Of a stretch of DNA of 64,000 bases, positions 1 to 20,857 are shown in pieces. The position numbers were made by a program, and so were the translations under genes. Position 1 is the stretch's first letter. The number at the start of each line of letters is the position of its first letter. A model generated the notes under the pieces. That model ran no database searches, had not been told where the DNA came from, and saw nothing but the letters and a program-made list of their open reading frames with translations. The stretch is from IMG/VR virus record IMGVR_UViG_3300028666_000022, positions 124,001 to 188,000 of that record, one strand, 5' to 3'.

Positions 1-166
1 CATCATCAACAATACCGTTTTCATATTCCTTAAATAAATCATCTTTTACATTACTAGCATATTTACTAGCATATCCAAATTTAATTGAACCTTCACTAAG
101 ACTAATATTAGTCTTGATCGCATAATTGATGATTTCAATTGCTTTATCTATTCTTTCACTTGTCAT
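1..166 (-). CDS. Hypothetical protein, runs off the left edge (MTSERIDKAIEIINYAIK...)
   Basis: Read manually: ATG at 166, open to position 1; follows the promoter at 205-235. Confidence 0.75.
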   Translation of the reverse strand, partial: MTSERIDKAIEIINYAIKTNISLSEGSIKFGYASKYASNVKDDLFKEYENGIVDD

Positions 167-204
167 AAATATTGTTTTTAATTAATGTTATTAAATATTT
201 TCAA

Positions 205-235
205 CAAACTTATTATAAATTATAATTAGTTGCAA
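205..235 (-). promoter_or_regulatory. Bacteroidota-type sigma70 promoter (TTG-N20-TAAGTTTG)
   Basis: Plus-strand CAAACTTA at 205-212 and CAA at 233-235, 20-nt spacer; matches the Bacteroidota -33 TTG / -7 TAnnTTTG consensus. Confidence 0.7.
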
Positions 236-262
236 GGGTTTTAAAAAATATATTGAATTTTT

Positions 263-571
263 CTAAATAAAAACATTACCATTTTCTTTCAAAAACTTAA
301 TACTTTCTTCAATTTTTTTACATTCTTCTTTAAAACTAGCCTCATTTTCAAGGCTTAAGTTAAACCATTCACCTTCTTTTCTAAGATGAGTATATCTCCG
401 ATGTAATGTTCTTTCTACTTTATCTGCAAAATCACATTCATATACCTCAATAAATTTTAATTCTGATGAATTTCCGGTCTGAAGTTGTTTCAGCCTTTTT
501 TTAGGATTAGTAGAAACACCAATTTTATAGTAACCATCTTCTTGGGATTGAATCAAATAAACGAATTTCAT
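263..571 (-). CDS. GIY-YIG nuclease, T5orf172/MUG113-like
   Basis: FVYLI...YKIG.S.NP.KRLKQLQTGN...GEWF motifs. Confidence 0.85.
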   Translation of the reverse strand: MKFVYLIQSQEDGYYKIGVSTNPKKRLKQLQTGNSSELKFIEVYECDFADKVERTLHRRYTHLRKEGEWFNLSLENEASFKEECKKIEESIKFLKENGNVFI

Positions 572-948
572 TTCTTTTTAATCCAAATTTTACCATAAAA
601 TAATTGAAATGTTAGGGTAAAACATAGAAATAAGATTAATGGATCAATATATAGATTATATATTGGTTTATAAAATATAGCACCGAGACAAAGACATACT
701 ATCATCATAGTTTTGCTGAAATGCCATAAATTAGTTAACCAACAAAAAATAGTAGATGATCCTAAGAATTTTTCACCTTGTTTATAATCACCATTTTTCC
801 ACATATTTTGCCAAGAAAATGGATTAATACATTTAATTATTTTGGGGTTTTTAATTTTACTAAAAACAGAAACATTCCATCTGGAATTAATAATATCCAT
901 AATAGAATTAAAAAATCCCGCTAAAACAAATAGTATTGCTGTTATCAT
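568..948 (-). CDS. Membrane protein
   Basis: Several hydrophobic segments; ATGA overlaps with both neighbours. Confidence 0.7.
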   Translation of the reverse strand: MITAILFVLAGFFNSIMDIINSRWNVSVFSKIKNPKIIKCINPFSWQNMWKNGDYKQGEKFLGSSTIFCWLTNLWHFSKTMMIVCLCLGAIFYKPIYNLYIDPLILFLCFTLTFQLFYGKIWIKKK

Positions 949-1178
949 TTCTTTTTAAATTTATTGATTAAGAATTTTGTTGGTATAATTATCCAAGCAT
1001 ATATAAGACTTACTAAACCAAACATTATTAAATAAGCAAGAAAGGGTGTTGATAACCAGAAGAATAAATCATTATCTGTTACTGCACATATTAAAAATAG
1101 TATAATACAAGCAAATAACGAAATAATTATTTTAAGTCCACCATCTTTTTCAAAAAGAAAATTAATTATATTTTTCAT
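945..1178 (-). CDS. Small two-TM membrane protein
   Basis: Two hydrophobic helices and a basic C-terminus. Confidence 0.65.
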   Translation of the reverse strand: MKNIINFLFEKDGGLKIIISLFACIILFLICAVTDNDLFFWLSTPFLAYLIMFGLVSLIYAWIIIPTKFLINKFKKK

Positions 1179-1186
1179 TTTATTTA

Positions 1187-1804
1187 TTATTTTAGAATTC
1201 CTAATATTTTTAAATATGCGTAACCTGTTGTGTAACTGTCACTTAAATCGTAGTTAATATCTTTAGGTTCTTTAGTATCTTTTTTATAAAACCATTCAAT
1301 TTGTGGTTCGAGTTTAGCAACTTTTTCCCAAATGTATCTTTTTTTGTCTTTTCTATATTTTTCAGGAAAACTAAGTGTTTCTATTTTCTCACCCTTTTTG
1401 TTATATGATGTTTTAACCAATTCAGTTAGAAAAAGTTTTCTTCCTTCATATATTCCAAGTTTATATGGAAATAAACCAAACACTTCATGAAGCACATATC
1501 TTGCCATTCCATTAAAACCAAGTAATAATGCAGTAGTATTAATGTTTACTGGAGTATTTTGTAATGGTGCTTCAACAACAATGTGAATTATTTCACCATT
1601 TAATTCATTTTCAATTCTATTTTTAAAATCAATACAATAGTTTTTAAATACATCGCATTTGTGAAGATCTCTGCAGTCCGTGGATATATTATCATCATTT
1701 TTTAAAGCCAGATGTTTAAGTTCAATAAGTTTACCTTTGTCATTCCATAAAGCACAACCTACATTAGTAGTAGAAATATCTAGTGACCAAATATATTTTT
1801 CCAT
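1187..1804 (-). CDS. RuvC-like Holliday junction resolvase
   Basis: RNase H-fold acidic motifs SLDISTTNVG, VVEAP, DLSDS. Confidence 0.75.
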   Translation of the reverse strand: MEKYIWSLDISTTNVGCALWNDKGKLIELKHLALKNDDNISTDCRDLHKCDVFKNYCIDFKNRIENELNGEIIHIVVEAPLQNTPVNINTTALLLGFNGMARYVLHEVFGLFPYKLGIYEGRKLFLTELVKTSYNKKGEKIETLSFPEKYRKDKKRYIWEKVAKLEPQIEWFYKKDTKEPKDINYDLSDSYTTGYAYLKILGILK

Positions 1805-1814
1805 AAATCAAATT

Positions 1815-2126
1815 TTAACATAAATCTTCAACATAATTTTTAATTTCTTCCATTGTTGCACCAGCTTCAATCATTTCTAAAATATCTGATTTAACTATAT
1901 CATAATATTCTTCACTTTTAGCTGAATCAATTTCAGAACAAATAGTTTCAATATTATAATTAGTGTAACTCATTCTACTATTGGTGGCGTGACAAAGTAC
2001 TGAACTATAATCACTCTCAAGTCTGTTGTAATCTTTTAATTTCCAAATTTGCCATTTAATGTACTCTAACCAATACCATTCTACTGGATGTGTTAAATCA
2101 AACCAAAATCTTTTTAATTTTTTCAT
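1815..2126 (-). CDS. Hypothetical protein
   Basis: ORF track; abuts its neighbours. Confidence 0.65.
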   Translation of the reverse strand: MKKLKRFWFDLTHPVEWYWLEYIKWQIWKLKDYNRLESDYSSVLCHATNSRMSYTNYNIETICSEIDSAKSEEYYDIVKSDILEMIEAGATMEEIKNYVEDLC

Positions 2127-2326
2127 TATTGTTTTTCTTTTACCTCATCAATTAATTTTTGAGTACCTTTGGGATCATATAAATATAGTTTTATTAGATC
2201 TTCGATGATGCCACCAATTTTTATGCTTTTACCTCTGCAAAGAGTTTTGAATTTATAATGTAATCCACCATCGATTATTATCGATTTAGATTTTGGCACA
2301 TTATTTTTTGTTGTAATATTTTCCAT
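2126..2326 (-). CDS. Ribbon-helix-helix-like DNA-binding protein
   Basis: KSIIID strand followed by two helices (LHYKFKTLC, IGGIIEDLIKLY). Confidence 0.65.
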   Translation of the reverse strand: MENITTKNNVPKSKSIIIDGGLHYKFKTLCRGKSIKIGGIIEDLIKLYLYDPKGTQKLIDEVKEKQ

Positions 2327-2376
2327 TTAATTTAAATTATTAATATATTAATTATTATGTTTTTATTCAATTTTAA

Positions 2377-2385
2377 TATAAATAC
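2377..2385 (-). promoter_or_regulatory. Putative late promoter GTATTTATA
   Basis: Recurrent intergenic motif, upstream of 2326. Confidence 0.55.
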
Positions 2386-2458
2386 TAAAAATTTATAAAA
2401 AAATATAAAATATTATGAAATAATCATAATTAATTAAATTAATCTCAAATATTTGTTT

Positions 2459-3202
2459 TTAAAAATCTAATGCAAAAACAATTGTTCTTGAAATTGTTGC
2501 ATCTTTAGAGATTGGATCGTTTAATTTAGCAATACCAATTAAATTTTTATTGGTATCATATAATCCTATTTCGGTGATAAAGACTTGAGATAAGTTATCC
2601 CATGTAGCATTTGTACTTGAATTAAATTGATTTAATGGTAAATTAATAGCAAGATCAGTAGTATATGCAATAGCTTCAATATCGGTAGAAACATTGCCAA
2701 AAAAATATTCTTCATCACCAAAACATAATTTATCATCATCAACACTTAATTTACTTGGATAATTTAAATAATTTAAGTTATAAGATGTCATTGAATCATA
2801 TTTATATAATGGTACGCCAAAAACAGATGATGTAATATTTGCTGGTGTTAAAGTAAATGTATTTCCTGTAGTATATCCGCTTACTTTATTTGTTACATCA
2901 AACATTTTCCAATTACTTGAAATTGGTTTAACGTCAGTAAGTTTACTATATGTTGAATTATTGATTAATTGAACTAAAATAAATATTTTATTTGCAGTAA
3001 ATCCAGTGCTACCATTTGGTGATAAGAATTTAAAATCATTTTTATTATCAAAATGAAGATTAACTTCTTTATTAACTATTGTATCAAGAAGAATTGAATT
3101 AATATAATTACAGTGTATTGCTTCACTATAACCACATCCATTAGTACTACCAGAATTAGGTACTAAAAGATAAGAAAAATATACTGTGAAACCGTTTGCC
3201 AT
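2459..3202 (-). CDS. Tail/baseplate structural protein (tail-collar-fibre-like C-terminal motif)
   Basis: Ends ITEIGLYDTNKNLIGIAKL...LDF; structural operon context. Confidence 0.6.
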   Translation of the reverse strand: MANGFTVYFSYLLVPNSGSTNGCGYSEAIHCNYINSILLDTIVNKEVNLHFDNKNDFKFLSPNGSTGFTANKIFILVQLINNSTYSKLTDVKPISSNWKMFDVTNKVSGYTTGNTFTLTPANITSSVFGVPLYKYDSMTSYNLNYLNYPSKLSVDDDKLCFGDEEYFFGNVSTDIEAIAYTTDLAINLPLNQFNSSTNATWDNLSQVFITEIGLYDTNKNLIGIAKLNDPISKDATISRTIVFALDF

Positions 3203-3215
3203 TAATAATTTTTAT

Positions 3216-3224
3216 TATAAATAG
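3216..3224 (-). promoter_or_regulatory. Putative late promoter variant CTATTTATA
   Basis: 13 nt upstream of the ATG at 3202. Confidence 0.45.
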
Positions 3225-4016
3225 TTAAAAATTCATTATTGAATTATTTCTATCGATATATGTTATACCATATTGATTTATTCCGCATGTTGTTAATGGA
3301 ACATTAGTGTCTAACCAATCTTCATTTGAATTTAAATTAATTTGAAAATCAGACATACTTGGATTTTTATCATAAGTATATTGAAAATATGTTTCAATAA
3401 ATCCAGGTTTTAATATTAATTGTCCCCCAATACTTGGTGATGGTCCAACAACATTTTCAACAATATTTGTATGAATTTCATCACTTAACGAATTGAATTT
3501 AAATGTAGTAATATTACAACTACAGCACGAAGAACAACATCCACATGAACAACAAGAACACGAGCAACAGCATGTACAACTACAACATCCACAAACATTA
3601 ATACTATTAATTGAATAATTAACAACTTTTTGAGAAGTTAATGGTGCATTATCTAATGTTTTAAGCCATAAATATAATGTTGAAATATTTTGATTTGGAT
3701 AACCACAATAGTGATTATTAATATTTGTTCCATTTACATTAAAAATAAGATTTTCGTCTTGAGTATTACCAATAACAATTGAACTTGTTGGTGTTTGTGT
3801 TGTTGTAGTAGTTGTAACCAATGGATCAACTGTTAATTCTTGTTGAAATGAACAACCATTTGAGTCTGTAATAATTAACGTATAAAAACCATTGGGTACA
3901 TCATCAAATTCATATGCACCAATAGCATCATGAACATTAACTGGAATTAAACTAGGTGTTAATTCTGCAGTAAAAGGTGCTACTCCACTAACTATCGTAT
4001 ATTTTATTGTTGACAT
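3225..4016 (-). CDS. Virion-associated protein: Ig/SprB-like N-domain, poly-Thr linker, internal poly-Cys tract
   Basis: SGVAPF...GFYTLIITDSNGC; VTTTTTTQTPT; 16 Cys in 26 aa at 3516-3593. Confidence 0.65.
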   Translation of the reverse strand: MSTIKYTIVSGVAPFTAELTPSLIPVNVHDAIGAYEFDDVPNGFYTLIITDSNGCSFQQELTVDPLVTTTTTTQTPTSSIVIGNTQDENLIFNVNGTNINNHYCGYPNQNISTLYLWLKTLDNAPLTSQKVVNYSINSINVCGCCSCTCCCSCSCCSCGCCSSCCSCNITTFKFNSLSDEIHTNIVENVVGPSPSIGGQLILKPGFIETYFQYTYDKNPSMSDFQINLNSNEDWLDTNVPLTTCGINQYGITYIDRNNSIMNF

Positions 4017-4041
4017 TTCATTTATATTTTATATAATATTT

Positions 4042-5271
4042 TTAACAACAACTGCCACATCCACAACAGCAACTATTGGAGGAAATAGTATTAAATTCAC
4101 TAACAGTAGTATTTGTTCCCAAAATAAAATTACCACCAATTTTACAAGCAATCGTAAACATACTAACAGTAGCACAATTTGTATAATTATAACCACAATT
4201 TGATAAATTACTATTTGCTATGGCATAAAATCTTAATGAATTAATATTTGTAGTATTAATATCAATATAATCATAATTGTGACATAAACAATTGCTAGTT
4301 GTTTGTGCTTGAAGAACCGTATTTATTGTGTTACAACAATTAGTATCACCAACAGTACAAACATATGAACAAGATGAGATTGATTGAGGTAAATTAACAA
4401 GACTACTTGATTGAGCACAGTCAACAAAACAAATTCTAAAACTTTGTCCAGAAGTTAAAGCAGGGGTTGTACTTATTGTTCCATATTTACAACCACATAC
4501 TAAAGGATTTGTAGTTAAATCAACGGGAACAAAATTTACGATAATTGGTGTTAATGTCGTTGTGGTAGTTGTTGTTGTAGGAACATTACTTTCATTTGTT
4601 TTTAATGTATTATTTAATATTGTTTCATTAAAACCAAACGGTATTGCACAAAATAATGTTAATACTGAACAACCACTTGTTGCAGTTGGTGTCGAACAAC
4701 ATGTACAGCAACTAGAAAATGAAGTAGATATGCTATAACGCAACAAATCTCCTTCACATAATGTAATCTGTGGTATTGTTTGAAAGTTATTATTTATATC
4801 ATATTTTACACTTATCCAATTATTGGTTCCATTTGCTTTACATGAAACACTAACATTACTATATAGTCCATTATTAGAATCACCCAAAGTACATGAATTA
4901 AAACATAAATTAACACATTCACCCATTGATAATGCTGGTGATATGTTTAAACAATCAGTAACACAGCAATTATTTGAACCAGCAGGTGAATTTGGTACAC
5001 CAGCTAAGTTAATTGTTTTTGTTGCTAATGTAGTTGTTCCTACTGTCACTGGTGTTGTAAATCCAGTACTAATTGAATTTCCAATATTATCTCTAACACT
5101 TAAACTATATGTAGTATTAGGAAATAATCCTCCAAATATATTACATGAACAACAAGTACTACCTGAATGCTCAATTATTTTTTGTTGCAAAACAGTATTA
5201 CAACCATTTAAACAAATTTGAGCAATGAATGGTTCAAAATTACCACCTATTTTAAATTTTAAATCACCCAT
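4042..5271 (-). CDS. Cys/Thr-rich virion-associated protein ending SCCCGCGSCC
   Basis: FN3-like N-terminus (LFPNTTYSLSVRD), PTTTTTTTTLTP linker, domain shared with 7506-9479. Confidence 0.65.
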   Translation of the reverse strand: MGDLKFKIGGNFEPFIAQICLNGCNTVLQQKIIEHSGSTCCSCNIFGGLFPNTTYSLSVRDNIGNSISTGFTTPVTVGTTTLATKTINLAGVPNSPAGSNNCCVTDCLNISPALSMGECVNLCFNSCTLGDSNNGLYSNVSVSCKANGTNNWISVKYDINNNFQTIPQITLCEGDLLRYSISTSFSSCCTCCSTPTATSGCSVLTLFCAIPFGFNETILNNTLKTNESNVPTTTTTTTTLTPIIVNFVPVDLTTNPLVCGCKYGTISTTPALTSGQSFRICFVDCAQSSSLVNLPQSISSCSYVCTVGDTNCCNTINTVLQAQTTSNCLCHNYDYIDINTTNINSLRFYAIANSNLSNCGYNYTNCATVSMFTIACKIGGNFILGTNTTVSEFNTISSNSCCCGCGSCC

Positions 5272-5273
5272 AA

Positions 5274-7451
5274 TTATACTATATTAATATTTTTGCTTAC
5301 AGTAAACATTATAATATTATTCAATCTTTCTCTAATTGAAACAACATAATTACCAGTACCATTAACATACAATTTTTTCGGTGCTCCAACAGTGCTAACC
5401 GTTTCCCAATTTAATGCTGAAGATGTTGATGGATGTATATTAAATTCTATCGTACCAACAATAGGATTAAAATTATTTGTAATAGTAAGTAAATAATTAC
5501 TTATTGTCACATATTTACCACCACTATCAGAATTTTGATTTAATGTAAATAAAGAATATAGTGGGTTACCAACAGCAACATAATCTCTTGAAAGCATAAA
5601 ATCAAATAAACCTCCAGTATCTCTAGTAACGATAGTATATGGTAAAGTAAACGTTAAGTCATTAAATATCGCTTCACCCAAATTAAATGATTGCCATTGA
5701 ATTGTAAAATCTGGAGCACCATAAGATTTAATTCCTATTGATGGTGTACCATATGTTATTCCAATATCACTTTGAAGTATTTTAATATTCGTTGGTCTAA
5801 TTTGAGTAATATTAAAATCTGGAATTAATCCACTTGGGGTAATTTGAGCATCATATAAATATAATGGACCGGTTGGGTTTGATATTGTAACACCACTTGT
5901 AACAACACAATTTGGTGATCCTAAATCATATAATTTTACTATATAATTACCAGTATTTAAATTATTAACTAATGTATTTCCAGTAATTGGTTGATAATAT
6001 AACCTATTAGTTCCACTAAGAACTTCAAGTATTAATTGTCCACTATTATTTTGTATATTATATATATTTATTTTACCATCAGTACCATTAATAATACTTG
6101 GTGAACTACCGCTAACATTATAAGTAACTAAACACCTGTTGCATCCAATTATGATATTATCATTAATTCCAACATTATAATTAGGTAGCGTCCATGATCT
6201 ATTTGATTTGTATGACATTGCAAATAATATTTCTTGATCTTCAATTACAAATATTTTTAAATCGTTAAAAATTTTACCAACAATATTACCCTGTAAATCA
6301 CCTAAATTATAATATGTGGTATTTAATGATCTTGTTACTCCAGTTAATGTTTTAACATCACCAATAGCTTTTAATGTTAAACCTAATTTTTTATTTGGTG
6401 ATTTATGCCACATTATAGTGGGAAGATTTAATGTAGGGGTATTTTTATATAATTCTTCTGCATATGTATTAGATGGTGAAGAATTTGTATAATGAATAAT
6501 TCCTAGTTTTTTTAAAACAGGAGCTTGGTTTTGAATGTATGAAACAAATCCACCATAAACATTACTTTTATATTCACCAAAATTTTTATTTGTTGTTTGA
6601 ACACCAATAATATTATCAGTATATACTATTGACATATTCCAAAAAGGAAATGTTATTGTAGGACATTGACTATTTTGAAGAAATGCAATAACTTCTTCAT
6701 TAATATAATCAGTAGAACTATTATTAAAAATTGATGTTCCAGTATAATTTATATAATTATAATAAACCAAAGCACCTGCAACAACATTACTTGAACCACC
6801 AATTAATTTACTAAAATCAGGTAAATTTCTATCTACTTGAATAATCAAATTATTATTACTTAATGTACCCGATGCAATATCTTGAATTTTATAAATTAAA
6901 TATGGTGTTGGATAATTAACATTAACACTATATCCTGTTGTATTAATACTATATGGATTTGTCCATTTAATTAATAATAGATCACCTATTTGCGGTTCAT
7001 TAACATTACCTTGATATGTTGGTGCTTTAAATAATTTTAGTAAAGTACCTCCACTCAGAGTATTTAATCTAATCATTACATCTGGTTGTTTAACATGATC
7101 ACTATCAGTAATAAATGTAGTTGTACCGCTATTTATTGAAAAAAATCCTATTGGTTGTACCGTATTTTGAATAATTGTTGGTGTTGATGGAACATTATTT
7201 ATTAAATTATATGAATCACCTGAATTATTTTTTGTAATAAACGATAAGATATTTGGATTTTTGTCTGCAGGTCTTAATATTAAAGAATTAAATGGATTAA
7301 AATTTGTTTCATTATTAAAATTATAATCAATTTCACTATCACCAATTGCAAAATATTTAAAATTTAAATTACCTTTAGATATTAATTCTCTACCCTTTGA
7401 AGTTAATTTTATATTTAAAACTATTGGATCTTTTTTATCAATAAATGCCAT
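5274..7451 (-). CDS. Tail/baseplate structural protein with appended Ig-like domains
   Basis: N-terminal LTSKGRELISKG..F.YFAIGDSE motif; beta-rich C-terminal half. Confidence 0.6.
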   Translation of the reverse strand: MAFIDKKDPIVLNIKLTSKGRELISKGNLNFKYFAIGDSEIDYNFNNETNFNPFNSLILRPADKNPNILSFITKNNSGDSYNLINNVPSTPTIIQNTVQPIGFFSINSGTTTFITDSDHVKQPDVMIRLNTLSGGTLLKLFKAPTYQGNVNEPQIGDLLLIKWTNPYSINTTGYSVNVNYPTPYLIYKIQDIASGTLSNNNLIIQVDRNLPDFSKLIGGSSNVVAGALVYYNYINYTGTSIFNNSSTDYINEEVIAFLQNSQCPTITFPFWNMSIVYTDNIIGVQTTNKNFGEYKSNVYGGFVSYIQNQAPVLKKLGIIHYTNSSPSNTYAEELYKNTPTLNLPTIMWHKSPNKKLGLTLKAIGDVKTLTGVTRSLNTTYYNLGDLQGNIVGKIFNDLKIFVIEDQEILFAMSYKSNRSWTLPNYNVGINDNIIIGCNRCLVTYNVSGSSPSIINGTDGKINIYNIQNNSGQLILEVLSGTNRLYYQPITGNTLVNNLNTGNYIVKLYDLGSPNCVVTSGVTISNPTGPLYLYDAQITPSGLIPDFNITQIRPTNIKILQSDIGITYGTPSIGIKSYGAPDFTIQWQSFNLGEAIFNDLTFTLPYTIVTRDTGGLFDFMLSRDYVAVGNPLYSLFTLNQNSDSGGKYVTISNYLLTITNNFNPIVGTIEFNIHPSTSSALNWETVSTVGAPKKLYVNGTGNYVVSIRERLNNIIMFTVSKNINIV

Positions 7452-7467
7452 TTAATTAATATTTTAT

Positions 7468-7476
7468 TATAAATAC
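7468..7476 (-). promoter_or_regulatory. Putative late promoter GTATTTATA
   Basis: 16 nt upstream of the ATG at 7451. Confidence 0.6.
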
Positions 7477-7505
7477 AAAAAAATATTTTTTAATTATTCA
7501 TATAA

Positions 7506-9479
7506 TTAACAACAAGAACAACTACAAGAACAAGAGCAACTACAAGAACAAGAGCAACTACAAGAACAAGAGCAACTACAAGAACAAGAGCAACTACAAG
7601 AACAAGAGCAAGAATTACTTAAAGCATTATGCGTTGAATCGCAATGTTTATTTACATCTATACTTGGTATTATTCCAATGCTTGAATTAATTCCAATAAT
7701 ATCAATAATTGAACAAGCACATGATGTTCCATTATTTGCATTTAATTTATAACATAGAGTATCACCATTATTTATGTTAAACTGGATAATACCACTGTTT
7801 GGATTAATACTACTATCAACAAAACATTTGGTTAAATAAGTAGATCCTAATGATGGTTTACAACTAATTGTAACACAAGCAGTAGTATTATTACCACAAC
7901 AAGTACTACCACAACTAATTAAACAATATGAAAGACAAGTATTAATATATTCACCAATTGGTACTGGAATATTAGTGTTAATGTAACCATTAGTTAATGA
8001 AATTGATGCATTTTGATTACAAAAACTAAGTGTTATTGGCACTGCTGGATTTATATTAGAAGCACAATCACTTTTTAAGGAAACATTAAGTATTGGATTT
8101 ACACCAATTGACGATGTTAAATTAGTAATACATAATTTTTCACTAGAAGAATTACCGGGATTTGGAGAAACTAATGTTGACGTATAACATAAAGAATCAC
8201 CATTTCTTGCAATTATTGTTGCTGATTGTGGTTGTGACATTAAATTATTAACAGTAGAAACAGGAACAAATGCATTACAACCACAAACACTATTTGAATT
8301 ACATGTAAATATAATATTTGATGTGCCGCCAATGGTTGTAGTAACTGCAGATAAATTAATTGTAACACATTCTCCAACTGGAATTACGGGTGAAAAATTA
8401 AACACACCACCAATTGTACATGTTTTATTTGTAGACAAATATGTGTTTACTGTTCTATTTACTGATACATTTACATCTAATTGTGGCTTATTTGATATAA
8501 CATTTACCGAACATTTCGTTAAATTAATACTTGGGTTAGTTGTATTTAATCCATCAACTGAAGTAATACTAAAATTAGCGTTTGAATTTGACGCATAACT
8601 AACTGCATTAGTATTTACTGCATAACAAACAATATCACCATAACATAATGTAAGTGAACCGTTTCTCGGTGAAATTCCATTAGTATTTGTAATATTAACA
8701 AAATTAATAAAACAATTACAACCATTTGGTTTACAACTAAAACCAATTGAAGAACTACCATTACCAGTAACCAATGCATTAGCAACATAATTTATCTGAA
8801 TTTTTTGATCAGGAGCTAATACAGTTGGATTTATTTCAAAACAACCCGTTTCATAATTAGAAGTAGTATTAGTGACTGAAGTAATTTTCTTTATACTAAC
8901 CACTTTTGGTGTTAGAGTAACTGTAGTACTTGGTAATAAAATAAACATTGAAACTATTTTTGAATATTCGCACACAACATAATCTTTTTCAACTATATAA
9001 TCTCTAATCATTACATTATATATTTCATTTGGATCTAAATTTAAGAAAGTTGCACTATTTTGCCAAACAAAATTATTTGAATCACCCGTTGAGGGATAAA
9101 CCTTATATTGCATTATACCATTTGCACTACCAGCATTAGTTACTCTAACCCCACTAAGAAATTTATATATTAAAAAATTTGTATTTAATGTACAAAAATA
9201 ATTACTGCAATTAGGTTCACTATATGTTGAACCACTAATTAATATTTTCTTATGTATATCACTTTCAATATTAATGTGATTTAGAAAATCATTAATCCTA
9301 TTATTATATTCATTTATTGATATTGATTGTAATTGTTCTGTTGTTAATGTCGAATAAGTATTGGAATTAAATGTAAATGAATTTAATAAATTACATTGAA
9401 CAGTATTACCAGTATATGTTCCAAGTCCACAACTAATAACACAACTCATATTTAAATTATATTTTCTGGCAGTTCCCAT
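7506..9479 (-). CDS. Cys-rich virion-associated protein with three repeated beta-domains and a (Ser-Cys)17-Cys tail
   Basis: Repeats of P...G/D....I...C...GD..CY; C-terminal SC tract. Confidence 0.7.
   Translation of the reverse strand: MGTARKYNLNMSCVISCGLGTYTGNTVQCNLLNSFTFNSNTYSTLTTEQLQSISINEYNNRINDFLNHINIESDIHKKILISGSTYSEPNCSNYFCTLNTNFLIYKFLSGVRVTNAGSANGIMQYKVYPSTGDSNNFVWQNSATFLNLDPNEIYNVMIRDYIVEKDYVVCEYSKIVSMFILLPSTTVTLTPKVVSIKKITSVTNTTSNYETGCFEINPTVLAPDQKIQINYVANALVTGNGSSSIGFSCKPNGCNCFINFVNITNTNGISPRNGSLTLCYGDIVCYAVNTNAVSYASNSNANFSITSVDGLNTTNPSINLTKCSVNVISNKPQLDVNVSVNRTVNTYLSTNKTCTIGGVFNFSPVIPVGECVTINLSAVTTTIGGTSNIIFTCNSNSVCGCNAFVPVSTVNNLMSQPQSATIIARNGDSLCYTSTLVSPNPGNSSSEKLCITNLTSSIGVNPILNVSLKSDCASNINPAVPITLSFCNQNASISLTNGYINTNIPVPIGEYINTCLSYCLISCGSTCCGNNTTACVTISCKPSLGSTYLTKCFVDSSINPNSGIIQFNINNGDTLCYKLNANNGTSCACSIIDIIGINSSIGIIPSIDVNKHCDSTHNALSNSCSCSCSCSCSCSCSCSCSCSCSCSCSCSCSCSCC
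7521..7610. repeat. Perfect 18-bp tandem repeat x5 (ACTACAAGAACAAGAGCA) encoding CSCSCS
   Basis: Five exact copies read directly, with a partial copy at 7509-7520. Confidence 0.95.
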
Positions 9480-9481
9480 TT

Positions 9482-10399
9482 TTAAAAAATTATATTTTGA
9501 AAATTATTTTCAGTTTCTTTAATTTCTTTCACATAATTATATGAACAATATTCTTTACTACATTTCAATTCTTTATTAAATGGTGATATTTGATGCTGTG
9601 TTTTTAGAAAATAATACCCATTATTTATAACTGCACCTGCATTATGATAAATATTTGTATTTTCCCATTTTTTTATCACGTCTGTTGCCCAACAAAAATC
9701 AAGTTTTTTCATAATTTTTGTTTTATGACCAAAATACCAAGCATTCCATAAAACAGCCCACATATCTGCAGTCCATGCTTGAATTGGATGTTCTGGATTA
9801 TATTTGTGTGATGAATTAACCATAAATACATATAAGTTTTCTGAATCTTTTTCAACTTTTCTCCAAAAATCAGCATTTATGTTTTTCATTAAATATTGTG
9901 CACCACCTGCATTTTCATCATTTTCCTCAACAAGATTTGAATTAATTCCAACAATTTCACACATTTTATGAAATAATTCTTCACTTTTACTTTTAATATA
10001 TTGACTACTAATATATGATCTAGTATCACTTAAATACCATGTATTACTTTTTTCTAAATCTGCAAATTTCATTTTTTTAGTAAAAATTACATCTGGATCA
10101 ATATAAAAAAATATTTCATTTTCTGCATTTGGATATTTTTCAAAAAATTTAGCCAAAATGTGTGGTCTTAATGTTGATGAATATTGTGGATTAATTCTCT
10201 CATCATTAAAAATATAAAAACTACATTTACTATTAGTTTTTGTCATTATATTTGTCAACACACTACTTTTTTGTATTGAATTTTTACCTATAACATAAAT
10301 AACATCTTCATCTAGTCCAAGTTTTTTAAAATTGTTTATTTGGACAAGCATTTGCCATAAAAAATAATTACTGTCAGGTAATGCAATTAAAAATTTCAT
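9482..10399 (-). CDS. GT-A glycosyltransferase resembling peptidyl-Ser galactosyltransferase / Hyp arabinosyltransferase (GT96/GT95-like)
   Basis: NYFLWQ N-terminal motif, DPD (DxD), WTADMWA, IYHN; motif order resembles plant SERGT1/HPAT as recalled. Confidence 0.6.
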   Translation of the reverse strand: MKFLIALPDSNYFLWQMLVQINNFKKLGLDEDVIYVIGKNSIQKSSVLTNIMTKTNSKCSFYIFNDERINPQYSSTLRPHILAKFFEKYPNAENEIFFYIDPDVIFTKKMKFADLEKSNTWYLSDTRSYISSQYIKSKSEELFHKMCEIVGINSNLVEENDENAGGAQYLMKNINADFWRKVEKDSENLYVFMVNSSHKYNPEHPIQAWTADMWAVLWNAWYFGHKTKIMKKLDFCWATDVIKKWENTNIYHNAGAVINNGYYFLKTQHQISPFNKELKCSKEYCSYNYVKEIKETENNFQNIIF

Positions 10400-10402
10400 A
10401 TG

Positions 10403-13400
10403 TTATGGTGTTGATATTGTTGTGGTTATTATTGGTGGAACAATTATTGATATTTCACCATTTGGTGTAACATCTGAAACTGTTGGTGTTAATTGTGTTA
10501 ATGAACTAACTATTCCACTTGGTGAACCAATTAATTTTAATGCTTTGTTTTCTATAGTAATTTGAATACTATCTCCATTTGTCATTGAAATTATTGTATT
10601 ATTTACAATATTTAAAATATTTGCAGTAGTTTCTGAATTATTCATACTATAAATAACTACACTATTCTTTTTTATTGTAATAAACGAATCTGATTCATTT
10701 CCAGTACCACCAGTAATATATAATTTACTAATAAAATTCAAGCTAATATCTACATTATATCCCGGTAATATTGCTGGTGATACAACTAAATCATATGTAC
10801 TTTGACCATAATATCCTGTTTGTATATTTGTTGATATTGCTTGTTGTGCTGTTTCTGATTCAATAAATGTTAATATTGCACTAAATGGAAATGCTGTAGT
10901 TGTTGTAGTGTTTGTTGGATATGAAATAGTAATGCCACTAACAATAAAATTTTTACATAAATTTTTAACACAAACAAAATCATTTGTCCATTCAACTTCT
11001 TGTGATAATGGTCTTTTCAAGAAAACACTACCATCATTTCCCATATAATTTAATTGAGAATCAAAACTATATTTTACTCCACTACCTAATGTATTTGTGT
11101 TAATAAATCCCATATTAACACCTCTTTTATATGTGAATTTTTGTTTAGTAAAAACAGTATTTCTAACTAATAAACCACTTTTTCTTAATATTATCGTAGA
11201 AGAAAGTAATTCATCAACAAACTTCTGAAAAAATGCATTATATTTATTTAAAAATGGATATAAATTTTCAAAAGTATAACCATTAGAATGTAATGGATTA
11301 TTAACAGGTAGTTTACTTCTTTTTAAATAATCACTATAAACTTTTAATAATGTTGGATACCAACCTCCTTTAGAATCTGTAACAACTTTTCTGTTTCGAG
11401 CATTAATTAATTTTCTTTGTATTAATTCAATAAATTCAAGAAAAGATAATTTACTTATATCACCAACACCAAAATCATTACCTATTATTGGATTAAAGAA
11501 ATCATTACCACCTATAAGATAATAAACACTAATAACACTATTGAATCTCAATCCTCGTGGCAAATATATTTCATATGGATTATTTAAATTAAGACTATAA
11601 TCTGTTTGAGGTTCTAATGCAATACCATCAATTAATATTTTTACTTCTGAAGCATTTTTTACTTTATAATTTAACTTATAAACAAATTTATTTGCTGAAT
11701 TATTAAAATAAATTTTACTACTATTAAAACTATCAATTCTTAAAACCTCACTTCTTGCAGCAATACTTGTATTACCAGTGACAGTAATATATGCTACTTG
11801 TACGTAAGGATCTTCAGATAAATATGCAATAACATCAGAATTTTGAATTATTAATTCACTACTATTATTTGGATTAACAATATAGTCAGCAATAAATTGA
11901 TTTGTTCCTTTAGTTAAGGCAACACCATTTATTGTTAATTGAACATCTCCATTTGGTAAAGCGGGTAATGGAACAATCGTACCATTAAGATTTGGTTTTA
12001 CTCTAGTTGCAACATATTTTACTGTAACACCTGAAATTGCTGGTGTTAACCCATTATTATATAAATAAGTAGCTTCAACAACATCTCTATTACCATTAGC
12101 ATTTACTGCAGTTCCATTTATTTTAAACGTACTACCAGTAATACCATAATCACTCTCAAAATTAGTTATTCCTGTTGCTCCTGTTCTTGGGGTATTTAAT
12201 AAAATTCCATTAAATCTAACTTCAATATCACCGTCTGGAGTAAATGGAAGCGTAAATTTATTTGCACTAGTATTATATCCTAACGATAGGTTAACATAAG
12301 TATATGGAAGAGTATAACCACTTGAATTTGCTGGAAAATCAATGTCTTTAATATATGAGAACACATCATATTCAATTCCTCTGGCTAAATCTAATGATAC
12401 CTCAGTTTCTTTTGTATTTAAAACTAATCTACTATCTCCTTGATAATATTGCTGTGTTGAATAATAACTTCTAGTTGTTGCTCCTGTTTGAATCCAAGAT
12501 TTTTTATTATCAACAGTTTGCATTAAATTAAATCCAGCCAAACGAAAAGCATCCATATATGCTTGTCCACTATCAGTATCACCAGAAACTTGGAAAAAAT
12601 AATTACTTGTTTCTAATGGTGCAACAGGATAACCATCAGTATCATACGGTAATGAATTCGAAGGAAAATCTGCTTGTGTTAATGTTACTTCTCTAGGATC
12701 TATTTTTCCTTCAACAGTATAAACATATTCATTAATACTAATAAATGGTTCTGGAATACCAATCAACATAAATATTGATTTAATTGCTTCTCTTGTTCCT
12801 TTTGATTTCCAAAAATAATTGGTATTCATTAATATTCTTCGCCATAATTCAATGTTCACCTCTGCAGGAAGTAAATCAGTATGTAAATTTCTTTCAAGAT
12901 TATCAATTGTAAAAAAACTATCAACTAATTCAGCTTCATTCACTAATGAAAAATAATCCCAACCAAACGTCCTAGCTAAATTACTTACTAATTGATCTGG
13001 AATATTATTAACTTTATCATAAGTAATAGTATTAATATATACCAACGAATCAATAAATTCTCGCATTAAATCAAACTCTCTACCATAAATTCTTAAAAGT
13101 TTGGTCATTTTACCATCTTCTGTAAGATCATACGTCTTTAATGATAAGGGAGTTAAAAATCTTGCAATTAAATCAGTTTTTATACTATCATACTTTGAAC
13201 CAATGGTTAATGCAGTATCTAAAAATTTTTGATATGGTGAAGCACTAATATCTATATTATATCCATCAGTCGTTGTCCATAATACTGTTGCATTTGCGTA
13301 AACTATATTTCCATCGTCTAACAGAGTAGGTTCACTCATTTTAAATTGAAAACCTTGAATATCTACTCTTTCTGAAACAATATACTGTTCATATTTTTCT

Positions 13401-14149
13401 AAATTTGCCCTAAATTCTTCGAAAATAAAATTATTGGGTTTCATGTGATAATCAAAATATCCAGTAGTTGTATTACCAGTATTAAATGGGAATGGATTAC
13501 CTGAAGTTTTTATGGTAATATGATTTACTCCTGAAGTATCACCTGTAAACCCAACTACATTATATGAATTATTTGCATCGTATTTTGACCATATTACATA
13601 TTTTTCAAGAGATAAATTAATGTTTTTAATCTCTTGATTATTAGGAACACTTACATTACCTTGATTAAATATTAATCCAAATTTATTTTTAATAAATTCA
13701 GAAGGAACATCAAATGTTGATATATCTGTAAGTGGATCATAAACAAAATTATAAAAACTAATATTACCACCTCTATTTACCTTTGAACTAATATATAAAC
13801 TTCCGGGATATGCTAATATTATATTCTGTATCGAAACTCTTAAAAGTTCATAAGCCGAACCAAATCTAACAAAAGTATTTAAATCAGACTTATCGAGATT
13901 TAAAACAACATTGGTTGAAAAATCATGAAGCATTGAAGACTGACTAGAATTAACTCCTAGAGTGTCTAATGTTACTGGCCTAACGAAGGAAGAAAGCGAA
14001 TTTGAGTAGTCGACATTTTTTTTTCCATCAAAGTTTGAGGTGATACTAAAACTTCCTAAAGTAAAGATAGTCTCAGAAGTAGTATTGTTGAAATTTTCAC
14101 CATTTAAGTTCTGGTCAAGATTATTATTAATTACCTTTACTTTTGCCAC
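10403..14149 (-). CDS. Large baseplate wedge/tail structural protein (P2 gpI-like segment), GTG start
   Basis: LARTFGW...WKSKGTREAI motif; repeated V..NG..L....DY Ig-like units; C-terminal Thr linker plus beta-domain. Confidence 0.65.
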   Translation of the reverse strand: MAKVKVINNNLDQNLNGENFNNTTSETIFTLGSFSITSNFDGKKNVDYSNSLSSFVRPVTLDTLGVNSSQSSMLHDFSTNVVLNLDKSDLNTFVRFGSAYELLRVSIQNIILAYPGSLYISSKVNRGGNISFYNFVYDPLTDISTFDVPSEFIKNKFGLIFNQGNVSVPNNQEIKNINLSLEKYVIWSKYDANNSYNVVGFTGDTSGVNHITIKTSGNPFPFNTGNTTTGYFDYHMKPNNFIFEEFRANLEKYEQYIVSERVDIQGFQFKMSEPTLLDDGNIVYANATVLWTTTDGYNIDISASPYQKFLDTALTIGSKYDSIKTDLIARFLTPLSLKTYDLTEDGKMTKLLRIYGREFDLMREFIDSLVYINTITYDKVNNIPDQLVSNLARTFGWDYFSLVNEAELVDSFFTIDNLERNLHTDLLPAEVNIELWRRILMNTNYFWKSKGTREAIKSIFMLIGIPEPFISINEYVYTVEGKIDPREVTLTQADFPSNSLPYDTDGYPVAPLETSNYFFQVSGDTDSGQAYMDAFRLAGFNLMQTVDNKKSWIQTGATTRSYYSTQQYYQGDSRLVLNTKETEVSLDLARGIEYDVFSYIKDIDFPANSSGYTLPYTYVNLSLGYNTSANKFTLPFTPDGDIEVRFNGILLNTPRTGATGITNFESDYGITGSTFKINGTAVNANGNRDVVEATYLYNNGLTPAISGVTVKYVATRVKPNLNGTIVPLPALPNGDVQLTINGVALTKGTNQFIADYIVNPNNSSELIIQNSDVIAYLSEDPYVQVAYITVTGNTSIAARSEVLRIDSFNSSKIYFNNSANKFVYKLNYKVKNASEVKILIDGIALEPQTDYSLNLNNPYEIYLPRGLRFNSVISVYYLIGGNDFFNPIIGNDFGVGDISKLSFLEFIELIQRKLINARNRKVVTDSKGGWYPTLLKVYSDYLKRSKLPVNNPLHSNGYTFENLYPFLNKYNAFFQKFVDELLSSTIILRKSGLLVRNTVFTKQKFTYKRGVNMGFINTNTLGSGVKYSFDSQLNYMGNDGSVFLKRPLSQEVEWTNDFVCVKNLCKNFIVSGITISYPTNTTTTTAFPFSAILTFIESETAQQAISTNIQTGYYGQSTYDLVVSPAILPGYNVDISLNFISKLYITGGTGNESDSFITIKKNSVVIYSMNNSETTANILNIVNNTIISMTNGDSIQITIENKALKLIGSPSGIVSSLTQLTPTVSDVTPNGEISIIVPPIITTTISTP

Positions 14150-14164
14150 AAATTTTGATTTTTA

Positions 14165-14173
14165 TATAAATAC
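14165..14173 (-). promoter_or_regulatory. Putative late promoter GTATTTATA
   Basis: 15 nt upstream of the GTG at 14149. Confidence 0.6.
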
Positions 14174-14180
14174 AACAAAA

Positions 14181-14215
14181 AATAAAACCCAAAAGATTAT
14201 GATTTTTCTTTTGGG
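14181..14215 (-). terminator. Intrinsic terminator
   Basis: Stem CCCAAAAGA (14188-14196) / TCTTTTGGG (14207-14215), followed by a T-rich run on the minus strand. Confidence 0.6.
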
Positions 14216-14244
14216 CTTAAAATGTTGTAAGTTATAATATATTT

Positions 14245-16124: not shown

Positions 16125-16150
16125 TTTTCAATTTATTAATAATAATTATT

Positions 16151-16840
16151 TTACGTATTTTTTACAATATTAAAGAATTTACCTGCAGCATAGGTTTCAA
16201 TATCAACCAAACTTTTCATATATTCGAGTTTATAATTTTTATCAAATGCCGATAATTCTTGTCTAGTTATAAATACATCATTAATGATTTTTGGATTACT
16301 AATGATATTATCTTTATTAGGATCTTTAAATATTGGAGCATTAATAAAATCAGGACTATTAGTGCCTTGTGGAGTATAACTAAAACAAGTACAATTATTT
16401 ACACCACAAGAATTAAATTTATCAATATATTTGATACCACCAATATAATAAACAACACATTGTGAAACACTTGAATTCTGATAATCAACACCATCATTAA
16501 CTATTGATGAACCACAAGAACAATCACAACTAGTTCCACTATTACTAATACGAGCAATATATTGATTATTAAAATCAGATGTTATAGTATATTTACGTAA
16601 TTCACTTAATCTACTTGTAGAAGTTCCAGTCACTGTTGGCAATAAAGTCCAAACAGTATTATTAGTAGTTATACCTGTGTAAGCATCAAAAAAACCAATG
16701 TCTTGTGATTCAGAAGTTAATAGAATATTAATATGGTAAATAGCTTTCAAATCAGGTATTATTGTTCTACAATTACCTGTACATGTAGAAGTAATACCTG
16801 TTGTAACTATTTGTTTTATCTTTTTTTTAATTAATTCCAT
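16151..16840 (-). CDS. Probable structural protein with a Cys insert (TSCDCSCGSS)
   Basis: Baseplate operon context. Confidence 0.55.
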   Translation of the reverse strand: MELIKKKIKQIVTTGITSTCTGNCRTIIPDLKAIYHINILLTSESQDIGFFDAYTGITTNNTVWTLLPTVTGTSTSRLSELRKYTITSDFNNQYIARISNSGTSCDCSCGSSIVNDGVDYQNSSVSQCVVYYIGGIKYIDKFNSCGVNNCTCFSYTPQGTNSPDFINAPIFKDPNKDNIISNPKIINDVFITRQELSAFDKNYKLEYMKSLVDIETYAAGKFFNIVKNT

Positions 16841-16870
16841 TAAAAAGTATATAATTTAAAAAACATTTTA

Positions 16871-18718: not shown

Positions 18719-18723
18719 TTTAT

Positions 18724-20458: not shown

Positions 20459-20857
20459 TTAAAAACTTAAATCCAGACTTCCATTTTCAAAGAAATTATC
20501 TTGACTATATTGAAATAGTATATTTACATTTATTTGTGTTTCTGGAATAGGATTACCATTATCATCAATATTCCAATTAAATGTTACTTTAGTAATTTTT
20601 AATGCTGGTATATAAAGAGACACAGTATTTTTTATTTCTTCTTCAATATCACTAGCAGAATTTTGATCGTTCATTTCAAACACATATTTCAAAAGACCCG
20701 TTCCAAATTGCGGCATCATATATCTTTCTCCACGCTGCGTTAATAATAATAGTAATAAATCAGAGGTTAGTGCATCTTTACTAACTTGATTGGTTGAAAA
20801 ATATGTGTTAGTATCAGGACTATCAGTTAAAGGAAACTTTATATTATATGAAATCAT
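20459..20857 (-). CDS. Baseplate gp25/gpW-like protein
   Basis: LLLLLTQRGER.MMPQFGT.L..YVFE motif. Confidence 0.85.
   Translation of the reverse strand: MISYNIKFPLTDSPDTNTYFSTNQVSKDALTSDLLLLLLTQRGERYMMPQFGTGLLKYVFEMNDQNSASDIEEEIKNTVSLYIPALKITKVTFNWNIDDNGNPIPETQINVNILFQYSQDNFFENGSLDLSF

Follow-up and report, generated by a model that had tools for sequence, protein, structure and literature searches.

Lineage-specific cysteine-rich tracts in tail-neighbourhood proteins of an uncultured jumbo phage

Why would several fibre-like genes of a single phage each encode a short peptide packed with cysteine? The question is raised by a window of 64,000 nucleotides (the whole stretch of DNA analysed) from the complete 339,898-bp genome of a jumbo phage with 25% GC and terminal repeats, recovered from metagenomes of waterlogged peat and of the rhizosphere (root-zone soil). 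Cysteine accounts for 1.5% of the residues across the 462 ORFs of the genome, and three neighbouring proteins with 7.2–9.3% Cys are the Cys-richest large proteins among them. The features concerned are as follows:

3225..4016, minus strand: gene for a 263-aa protein (P0001) with two beta-sandwich (Ig-like, adhesin-like) domains and a poly-Thr linker (ORF, AlphaFold)
3516..3593, minus strand: 26-aa Cys/Ser/Gly tract, an in-frame insert in a loop of the second beta-sandwich of that protein (translation, alignment)
4042..5271, minus strand: gene for a 409-aa Cys-rich fibre-like protein (P0035; ORF, 9.3% Cys) with an N-terminal Ig-like domain, a poly-Thr linker and a Cys-rich C-terminal part
4045..4074, minus strand: C-terminal 10-aa tail of the 409-aa protein with 6 Cys, Cys-Cys standing directly before the stop codon (translation)
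4693..4716, minus strand: internal 8-aa motif with 4 Cys, residues 186–193 of the 409-aa protein (alignment)
7506..9479, minus strand: gene for a fibre-like protein of 657 aa, rich in Cys, that has repeated beta modules and a Cys framework conserved among homologs (ORF, alignment)
7509..7610, minus strand: C-terminal tail of the 657-aa protein with ~17 Ser-Cys pairs and a final Cys-Cys, encoded by an 18-nt tandem repeat
9482..10399, minus strand: gene for a conserved 305-aa neighbour, a possible GT-A-fold protein glycosyltransferase, given for context and carrying no tract (phrog_4417, function unknown)
16151..16840, minus strand: gene for a 229-aa protein with extra Cys, adjoining a baseplate wedge gene (ORF)
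16511..16549, minus strand: 13-aa insertion in the 229-aa protein with a Cys/Ser/Gly motif and 3 Cys (BLASTP alignments)

AlphaFold modelled the 263-aa protein as two all-beta domains with a mean pLDDT of 82.5, for which Foldseek returned MSCRAMM adhesins, integrin and pilins, all at low TM. A suspected affinity of the N-terminal domains to SprB repeats was not confirmed by Pfam, where CarboxypepD_reg and SdrD_B matched below threshold only, and a tblastn search against GenBank phages gave no match. The 33 homologs, at 40–60% identity, are mostly 233–234 aa long. The tract contains 16 Cys, 7 Ser, 2 Gly and 1 Thr, its cysteines encoded by 13 TGT and 3 TGC codons; minus-strand translation and Tandem Repeats Finder (TRF) bore out its initial annotation as 26 residues with 16 Cys, mixed codons and no exact repeat. 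Even at a score of 30, TRF reported no repeat in 3516–3593 or in 4042–4080, and the self-similarity of the tract DNA reached only 60–72%, in a 9-nt register. The tract is missing in all 33 homologs, including 22 of the 22 aligned; relatives have zero to four residues at the site and one (P0028) an unrelated insert of ~85 aa. It is placed between strands 130–138 and 171–177, where residues 144–153 and 158–161 have a pLDDT below 50, and an ESM Atlas search with the tract alone gave no usable match.

The 409-aa protein is a weak paralog of the 657-aa one (E = 1e-4), and the alignments indicate that both families are Cys-rich in general and only the tails are new. Across 62 representatives of the 409-aa family, drawn from 1.84 billion proteins, the Cys content was 1.2–8.4%; none matched the 10-aa tail or exceeded five Cys per 12-aa window, and many have a Gly-rich tail at the C-terminal end instead. 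Columns 188–192, within the internal motif, hold Cys in none of the six syntenic homologs. In the 657-aa family, ~20 Cys columns are conserved in five to six of the six homologs, whose Cys content is 3.8–6.7%; these homologs lack the Ser-Cys tail and end a few residues past the conserved segment that precedes it. TRF described the DNA of this tail as an 18-nt period in 5.6 copies (as assembled here) with 98% match at 7511–7611, and the tail is a fresh slippage product. Given that the unit is a multiple of three, slippage would alter the length of the tail with no on/off switching. Ser/Thr-rich spacers stand directly before the tails.

In alignments of the 229-aa protein, the homologs in L240 and L241 are interrupted by a gap of 13 residues that coincides with its insertion, and in the aligned part the phage protein has 7 Cys vs. 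zero to two in these homologs. A fifth case was found outside the window: the last 13 residues of a 294-aa protein, whose gene lies close to that of the tail sheath, form a tail with 8 Cys. None of the 118 homologs listed has this tail, most having zero or one Cys in total, and some carry Ser/Gly/Thr tails or extra domains at the site. The model has a low-pLDDT tail attached to a confident beta-sandwich core, for which no PDB match was found (Foldseek E > 0.1; VIA Z < 5). Translation also confirmed the Cys-rich tail of the 409-aa protein ending in Cys-Cys, the terminal Cys-Cys of the 657-aa protein and the small Cys/Ser/Gly motif of the 229-aa protein, all noted initially; the idea that the shared Cys-Cys terminus is a motif of its own was abandoned, as it merely follows from Cys-dense tails placed at the very end.

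In total, the five tracts comprise three C-terminal tails and two loop insertions, 7–34 residues long in proteins of 229–657 aa, and their 90 pooled residues include about 51 Cys, 30 Ser, 6 Gly, 2 Thr and 1 Asp. At least six Cys within some 12-aa window were found in four proteins, compared with 0.13 expected from within-protein shuffles, and three proteins end in Cys-Cys where 0.10 are expected; the pattern is far beyond chance, which is excluded as its source. The homologs scanned numbered 33, 62, 6, 2 and 118 for the 263-, 409-, 657-, 229- and 294-aa proteins, respectively, and tracts were found in none. By this comparison, all five tracts are lineage-specific. Matches of their neighbours to PHROGs put the tract-bearing genes next to those of the baseplate wedge and close to that of the tail sheath; ORF 16871–18718, which adjoins the gene of the 229-aa protein, matches the baseplate wedge family phrog_219. 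The tract-bearing proteins themselves belong to no family in Pfam, PHROGs or NCBIfam, and none matches an annotated structural family; gene neighbourhood and fold make them candidate components of the virion.

The presence of the tracts in five proteins, at different positions and without counterparts in homologs, supports separate origins. Copying between tracts was rejected, with the pairwise local alignment scores of the tract DNAs equalling a null of 500 synonymous re-codings, and the rest of the genome contained neither a significant match to any tract nor a second copy; with the DNAs no more alike than re-codings and no match elsewhere, a copy-and-paste origin can be set aside. A diversity-generating retroelement was likewise rejected, as the genome has no reverse transcriptase (PF00078) and no second tract copy. 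The initial annotation had proposed that the tracts arose several times and not by one slippage accident: the first part stands, with five proteins affected, homologs lacking the tracts and DNAs unlike one another, while the second fails for the 657-aa tail and its 18-nt tandem repeat.

Our best explanation, held as possible rather than probable, is that the tracts display clusters of thiols, which would bind metals or link adjacent proteins of the virion to one another. Five proteins of the tail and baseplate neighbourhood would each have gained a short Cys/Ser/Gly-rich peptide, and the variability of the sites in relatives implies that these are presumably exposed. Unstructured on their own and free of bulky or charged residues, the tags would chelate soft metal ions in thiolate clusters of the metallothionein type, form reversible disulfides, or do both. 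As several proteins of one gene neighbourhood gained tags in the same lineage, it is most economical to assume contact of the tags with one another or with a metal that they share; by bridging, they would cross-link or latch peripheral parts of the virion. Where modelled, the tracts are predicted to be floppy, as a loop in the 263-aa protein and a tail in the 294-aa protein, both on confident beta-sandwich cores. The variable positions in homologs and the low confidence of loop and tail in these two AlphaFold models agree with the earlier view that the tracts are not buried conserved sites. As to whether they replace Gly/Ser/Thr loops, a check proposed initially, the sites do vary, and Gly-rich tails occur in relatives of the 409-aa protein and Ser/Gly/Thr tails in some homologs of the 294-aa protein.

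Recurrence and composition together suggest selection for thiol clusters, and we infer that the thiols are functional, with metal or disulfide bridging as the possible mode of action. The peat and rhizosphere habitat and the two radical SAM genes of the genome, both far from the tracts, fit a low-oxygen setting in which free thiols persist. Pfam searches with the isolated tracts at E ≤ 10 gave no family and no metal-binding match, and the genome encodes no Erv1, DsbA or thioredoxin, with glutaredoxin matches below threshold only. A phage without thiol oxidoreductase or metallochaperone offers nothing that points to dedicated thiol chemistry, and this counts against the thiol-cluster reading. 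Support of Cys-rich late proteins by a phage tRNA-Cys was considered and rejected, the phage tRNAs being a tRNA-Arg and two tRNA-Gly. In a bolder form, to which we attach little probability, the five tags would make up a co-evolved network at the periphery of the baseplate, working as a latch gated by redox state or metal. Disulfide or metal-thiolate bridges would hold fibres or decoration proteins while the latch is closed, under oxic or metal-loaded conditions, and it would open under the reduced conditions of an active anaerobic host. If so, infectivity would follow the oxic–anoxic swings of the wetland root zone.

The main rival, somewhat unlikely in our judgement and nevertheless to be taken seriously, is tolerated low-complexity drift, by which rapidly evolving fibre proteins would gain TGY- or WSY-rich sequence in permissive loops and at permissive termini through slippage and AT-biased point mutation (Gly GGT to TGT; Ser AGT or TCT to TGT), with Cys having no specific role. 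The 98%-perfect repeat of the Ser-Cys tail, a recent slippage product, indicates that such sequence can come about in this genome by mutation alone. Part of the pattern could be mutational, since one G-to-T substitution, of the kind that an AT-rich genome favours, turns GGT into TGT. Other inserts and tails at these sites in relatives (the ~85 aa of P0028, Gly-rich tails, Ser/Gly/Thr tails or domains) point the same way, as does base composition: the region has 25–27% GC and is more AT-rich than the neighbourhoods of five of six relatives (26% to 33%). However, relative L004, with 26% GC, lacks the tracts in its homologs of the 263- and 409-aa proteins, and drift would have to explain why a single rare residue type was gained separately five times in this lineage, but not once in over 200 homologs, in a genome of ordinary Cys content.

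The sequence of the tracts also speaks against drift. They contain no Tyr, Phe, Trp or Arg, and no aromatic or basic residue at all, though each of these four is one substitution away from TGT, and the frame in which the TGY-rich DNA is translated is that of Cys in five of five tracts, never that of Val or Leu. TGC, the rarer Cys codon, encodes 10 of 48 tract Cys vs. 10% genome-wide, and the GC content of the tracts is 36–44% vs. 25% for the genome; both features favour retention over drift. When the 12-aa windows of the proteome were ordered from the lowest complexity upwards, Cys tracts took ranks 1, 3 and 9, and other low-complexity tracts are few, which indicates that the genome is not generally prone to simple-sequence expansion.

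Post-translational modification is a less likely alternative and, on balance, improbable. Here the tracts would be substrates for S- or O-glycosylation by phage glycosyltransferases, or for conversion by host enzymes to thiazole/oxazole, lanthionine or thioether. The cores of TOMM and other RiPP peptides (streptolysin S, microcin B17, heterocycloanthracins) are runs of Cys, Ser, Thr and Gly that the tracts resemble in composition, as they do S-glycosylated peptides; the Ser/Thr-rich spacers before the tails and three GT2 genes elsewhere in the genome may be added to this. The fibre gene block also includes the GT-A-like 305-aa neighbour, whose ESM Atlas model has a TM of 0.94 to a Bacteroidota cluster carrying Glyco_transf_7C and 0.75 to HPAT, with no match to the Pfam HPAT model. 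But a gene of 304–305 aa is kept at the same position in six of six fetched relatives, all without tracts, and the link to glycosyltransferases proposed initially was therefore given up. TOMM cores are part of small leader-bearing peptides, whereas the tracts form part of large, folded proteins, and the genome is without cyclodehydratase, dehydrogenase or lanthionine synthetase: YcaO (PF02624) was missing from the complete genome at E ≤ 1, with control genomes matching, though a host could supply such an enzyme, and LanC (PF05147) was missing too. The radical SAM proteins are a KamA-family aminomutase (TIGR00238, 320 bits) and a distant RlmN/Cfr-like protein, the best-scoring families listed for either being no peptide maturases; no SPASM-type maturase was found in the genome, and peptide-maturase models matched the KamA protein marginally (E about 7e-4, bits far below the cut-off).

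A role at the level of nucleic acid, as a 3′-end RNA element or recombination hotspot with the peptide as a by-product, is very improbable: three of the five tracts coincide precisely with the 3′ end of a gene and every tract is low-complexity DNA with a purine/pyrimidine skew, but two tracts are internal, they share no sequence beyond composition, the reading frame is kept and always that of Cys, and no inverted-repeat partner exceeds 72–76% complementarity. An artefact of assembly or sequencing can be dismissed, for although low-complexity DNA is error-prone and contigs of four runs stop at ~7548 and resume at ~7582, inside the 18-nt repeat, an identical 263-aa protein is found on 7 contigs (the five listed coming from five different assemblies), contigs from two further runs span 3400–4857 and 3427–4212 with no differences and no gaps, and in-frame homology resumes on either side of each tract. 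The tracts of the 263-aa protein and the 409-aa tail were reproduced exactly in independent assemblies, and outside the 18-nt repeat no tract had indels among the contigs compared.

Metallothioneins and the tails of metallochaperones (such as the C-terminal tail of SlyD) are Cys-rich metal binders, often with the Cys-rich part at a terminus. Like metallothioneins, the tracts are dense in CC, CxC and CxxC with Ser and Gly between, lack aromatics and are probably unstructured without metal. Unlike those small, free proteins, they are grafted on large beta-sandwich proteins of virion type, and their Cys density of 57–62% is about twice that of metallothioneins or Cys-rich metal-binding tails; no tract matches a Pfam metallothionein. 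In phages, lambda gpL has an Fe-S cluster, and to our knowledge metal ions or cross-links that stabilise tail parts always occupy conserved, structured sites. The Ferrojan Horse hypothesis (bioRxiv 10.1101/674382) builds on the His-x-His iron sites at the fibre tip of T4 gp37. The tracts share with gp37 short periodic metal-ligand residues in a distal tail, the CxC of the Ser-Cys tail paralleling HxH in a putative ligand role. In contrast, they use Cys instead of His and have no homology to gp37 or gpL, whose sites are structured and conserved and lie buried along the axis of the fibre, whereas the tracts are lineage-specific and predicted to be disordered. The 657-aa tail, with its 18-nt unit in 5.6 copies, is akin to slipped-strand variable repeats; the other four tracts have no repeats. 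The tracts occupy the same length-variable positions as the hypervariable loops and exchangeable C-terminal modules of phage receptor-binding and decoration proteins, which are diversified binding loops or folded modules, unlike a homogeneous thiol-rich peptide.

A search of the full-text literature found no natural precedent for poly-Cys tags on phage tail-region proteins. What the genome offers are probably unstructured poly-Cys peptides on peripheral tail-region proteins, gained repeatedly by one uncultured jumbo phage, and their absence from more than 200 related proteins hints that the particle may carry a cross-link or sensor based on thiols or metal. If functional, they would give virions a new use for thiols, whether to capture metal, to sense redox state or for covalent stapling once outside the cell, and would be a natural counterpart of the Cys tags engineered into phages. 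If neutral, they would be a clean case of how far composition drift can reach at permissive sites of fibre proteins.

We surveyed IMG/VR with two patterns, seven consecutive TGY codons and seven TGY at alternate positions, which would miss four of the five tracts described here. Among the 281 matches listed, 18 were in an open frame of at least 150 aa, most resembling out-of-frame repeats. Inversion of the poly-Thr linkers was rejected as a source of the tracts, the best antisense match being 16 nt (E = 0.45) and the arms 72–76% complementary. The reverse complement of the ACA, ACT and ACC codons of the linkers does read as Cys, Ser and Gly.

Our firm descriptive conclusion is that a single phage lineage has gained, on five independent occasions, a thiol-rich and probably unstructured peptide in a protein of its tail and baseplate neighbourhood, each at a variable loop or terminus. 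Four tracts lie within the window and one elsewhere on the contig (G000:C1, of which L009 is a stretch):

3225–4016, 263-aa protein, 26-residue tract at 3516–3593
4042–5271, 409-aa protein, 10-residue C-terminal tail with 6 Cys
7506–9479, 657-aa protein, C-terminal run of ~17 Ser-Cys pairs, then Cys-Cys
16151–16840, 229-aa protein, small Cys/Ser/Gly motif
G000:C1:265113–265997 (L009:9113–9997), plus strand, 294-aa protein outside the window, three genes from the tail sheath gene

The window covers bases 124,001–188,000 of one 339,898-bp contig. IMG/VR puts this contig, which has direct terminal repeats, in the class of complete viruses; GC is 25% across the whole genome. Within positions 1–20,000, all substantial ORFs are on the minus strand. 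Near-identical sequence was found only in rhizosphere and peat metagenome runs, and a Bacteroidota host is weakly hinted at. Genes of the window include the following:

16871–18718, baseplate wedge protein matching wedge families, ~27% identical to wedge proteins from myoviruses of Flavobacterium and Microcystis
20459–20857, gp25-like wedge subunit
54133–55023 and 55063–57150, minus strand, two YadA-head repeat proteins (Pfam PF05658) with raised Cys (4.4 and 5.0%)

Every feature described in the initial annotation was present in the four window proteins. The tract at 3516–3593 consists of 16 Cys, 7 Ser, 2 Gly and 1 Thr, with the Cys encoded by 13 TGT and 3 TGC codons and the Ser codons mixed. 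Among 462 ORFs called over the whole genome for Cys counts, Cys amounts to 1.5% overall, and three neighbouring proteins with 7.2, 9.3 and 7.9% are the Cys-richest above 100 aa. At least 6 Cys per 12-residue window were seen in four proteins (0.13 expected when each protein is shuffled), and a Cys-Cys terminus in three, including the 409- and 657-aa proteins (0.10 expected). The same scan uncovered the fifth tract, missing from the initial list, in which a spacer rich in Ser and Thr leads into a 13-residue tail containing 8 Cys. The YadA-head repeat proteins, which look like trimeric-adhesin-type fibre proteins, contain no poly-Cys tract.

The central result comes from comparison with homologs, none of those examined carrying the tracts. 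The 33 homologs of the 263-aa protein (40–60% identity, nearly all 233–234 aa) have one or two Cys in total, and the alignment shows the tract to be an in-frame insertion where relatives hold 0–4 residues. A homolog in one relative (P0028, L004:10001–10960) carries an unrelated, Cys-free insert of ~85 residues at exactly this loop, which marks it as an insertion hotspot. For the 294-aa protein we recovered 283 homologs. The Cys-rich tail was found in none of the 118 listed; most of these have 0–1 Cys in total, and they typically stop ~22 residues short, with a conserved motif as their end. A word search gave four homologs of the 409-aa protein, and a full scan of 1.84 billion representatives raised the family to 62 members. 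This family is generally Cys-rich (1.2–8.4%), but no member exceeds 5 Cys per 12-residue window or has a Cys tail, many having Gly-rich C-terminal tails instead. The 657- and 409-aa proteins are distant paralogs. About 20 Cys columns of the former are conserved in five or six of its six syntenic homologs, which stop shortly past the conserved segment preceding the tail. A 776-aa homolog from the 26% GC relative (L004:4106–6436) has short internal clusters of at most 5 Cys per 12 residues, indicating milder Cys clustering elsewhere in the clade. Two homologs were recovered for the 229-aa protein; both lack the 13 residues that hold its motif, and the aligned part has 7 Cys in the window protein versus 0–2 in these. 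Tract-free neighbours (1248, 725, 305 and 247 aa) have Cys counts as low as those of their homologs, and the change is therefore local rather than proteome-wide.

The tracts are very unlikely to be assembly artefacts: the identical 263-aa protein was found on seven contigs, the five listed representing five different assemblies, and Logan contigs from two other runs cover 3400–4857 and 3427–4212 with zero differences and zero gaps. Pairwise local DNA alignments of the five tracts gave the same scores as random synonymous recodings of these peptides, and a sensitive whole-genome search of either strand revealed no significant second copy, in support of the claim that such tracts arose several times. 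The description as non-repetitive holds for the 263- and 409-aa proteins, in whose tracts Tandem Repeats Finder detected no tandem repeat, and fails for the Ser-Cys tail, which contains a period-18 repeat at 7511–7611 (5.6 copies in this assembly, 98% match) inside which other runs' contigs break. Poly-Thr linkers of 5–8 Thr join domains of three proteins:

3780–3830, minus strand coding, 263-aa protein
4545–4580, minus strand coding, 409-aa protein
10890–10910, minus strand coding, 1248-aa protein

The linkers of the 263- and 409-aa proteins are conserved in every homolog aligned. Read as the reverse complement, the linker codons give Cys/Ser/Gly, though without significant similarity to the tracts. 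A diversity-generating retroelement was excluded because the genome lacks a reverse transcriptase.

An AlphaFold model of the 263-aa protein (mean pLDDT 82.5), built from a 23-sequence alignment, shows two beta-sandwich domains of high confidence joined by a low-confidence poly-Thr linker, and places the tract in a low-confidence loop flanked by strands 130–138 and 171–177. The best fold matches, with low TM-scores, were tandem Ig-like bacterial adhesins, integrin legs and pilins. The 294-aa model has a confident beta-sandwich core (residues ~50–245) with no recognisable fold match and a disordered tail (residues 275–294, pLDDT <50).

We tentatively read the tracts as functional thiol tags, at somewhat less than an even chance. 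Function is favoured by the recurrence of one rare residue type, gained five times in this lineage and never among the homologs examined, by the lack of Tyr, Phe, Trp and Arg, each one step from TGT, by the over-use of TGC and raised GC in the tracts despite the strong AT bias of the genome, and by the scarcity of other low-complexity tracts. The main rival, tolerated drift, we regard as somewhat less likely. In its favour, the Ser-Cys tail demonstrates slippage at work in this genome, and Gly-rich tails like those of relatives could become Cys through single G-to-T changes under AT pressure. That the tracts are substrates for modification is improbable, and the phage encodes no supporting enzyme. 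Among enzymes that could act on the tracts, YcaO, LanC-like, Erv1/ALR, thioredoxin and DsbA had no match in the complete genome while control genomes did match, and glutaredoxin matches were below threshold.

Analogues for the thiol chemistry are metallothioneins and metallochaperone tails rich in Cys. If the tracts are functional tags, metal-thiolate clustering and/or reversible disulfide formation would be the likeliest chemistry. Since the tags turn up together in several proteins from the same neighbourhood of genes, the simplest account would have them link up with one another or bind a common metal. Full-text literature searches turned up nothing relevant on natural poly-Cys or metallothionein-like virion tags. 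The closest concept is iron in tail fibres under the Ferrojan Horse hypothesis (bioRxiv 10.1101/674382). The tracts touch on known themes of metal or cross-link use in tails and hypervariable fibre tips, and poly-Cys tags are directly testable.

Other enzyme genes of the phage, the last of them putative, include the following:

G000:C1:67–1341, minus strand, radical SAM gene, KamA-family aminomutase (320 bits to TIGR00238)
G000:C1:81016–82026, minus strand, radical SAM gene, distant RlmN/Cfr-like
G000:C1:221192–221593, 225736–226107 and 240063–240431, GT2-family glycosyltransferase domains in ORFs of 499, 639 and 280 aa
9482–10399, minus strand, conserved 305-aa gene (phrog_4417) within the fibre gene block

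The radical SAM genes encode oxygen-sensitive enzymes and fit an anaerobic host; the RlmN/Cfr-like gene adjoins a 60-aa ORF with 7 Cys (G000:C1:80777–80959). The phage is rich in glycosyltransferases. Glycosyltransferase assignment of the 305-aa protein had no HMM support; its ESM Atlas model is similar to GT-A protein glycosyltransferases, with TM-scores of 0.94 against a cluster bearing Glyco_transf_7C and 0.75 against HPAT. In combination with the neighbours' poly-Thr linkers, this suggests that the linkers may be O-glycosylated. In each of the six relatives fetched, a gene of 304–305 aa sits at this position, and none of them has the tracts, so the proposed link between tracts and glycosyltransferase content was not borne out.

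Three further genes were observed among the structural genes:

15123–16124, minus strand, 333-aa ORF with four repeated helix-turn-helix-like modules, among baseplate-region genes
18724–20424, minus strand, 566-aa protein between baseplate genes
L009:6912–7400 (G000:C1:262912–263400), minus strand, 162-aa ORF with a lipoprotein-type signal peptide and lipobox Cys, among tail genes

The 333-aa ORF has no counterpart in two relatives with conserved synteny (L240, L241) and could be a mobile gene of the homing-endonuclease type that inserted here; the 162-aa ORF may encode a protein anchored in the membrane, for instance a superinfection-exclusion factor. The 566-aa protein comprises about eight zinc-ribbon-like repeats of ~48 residues, all of which contain Cys pairs and an HGEF motif, and a distinct C-terminal domain; a gene matching DUF723/DUF4379 is present in the phage genome (L010) and in a relative (L008).
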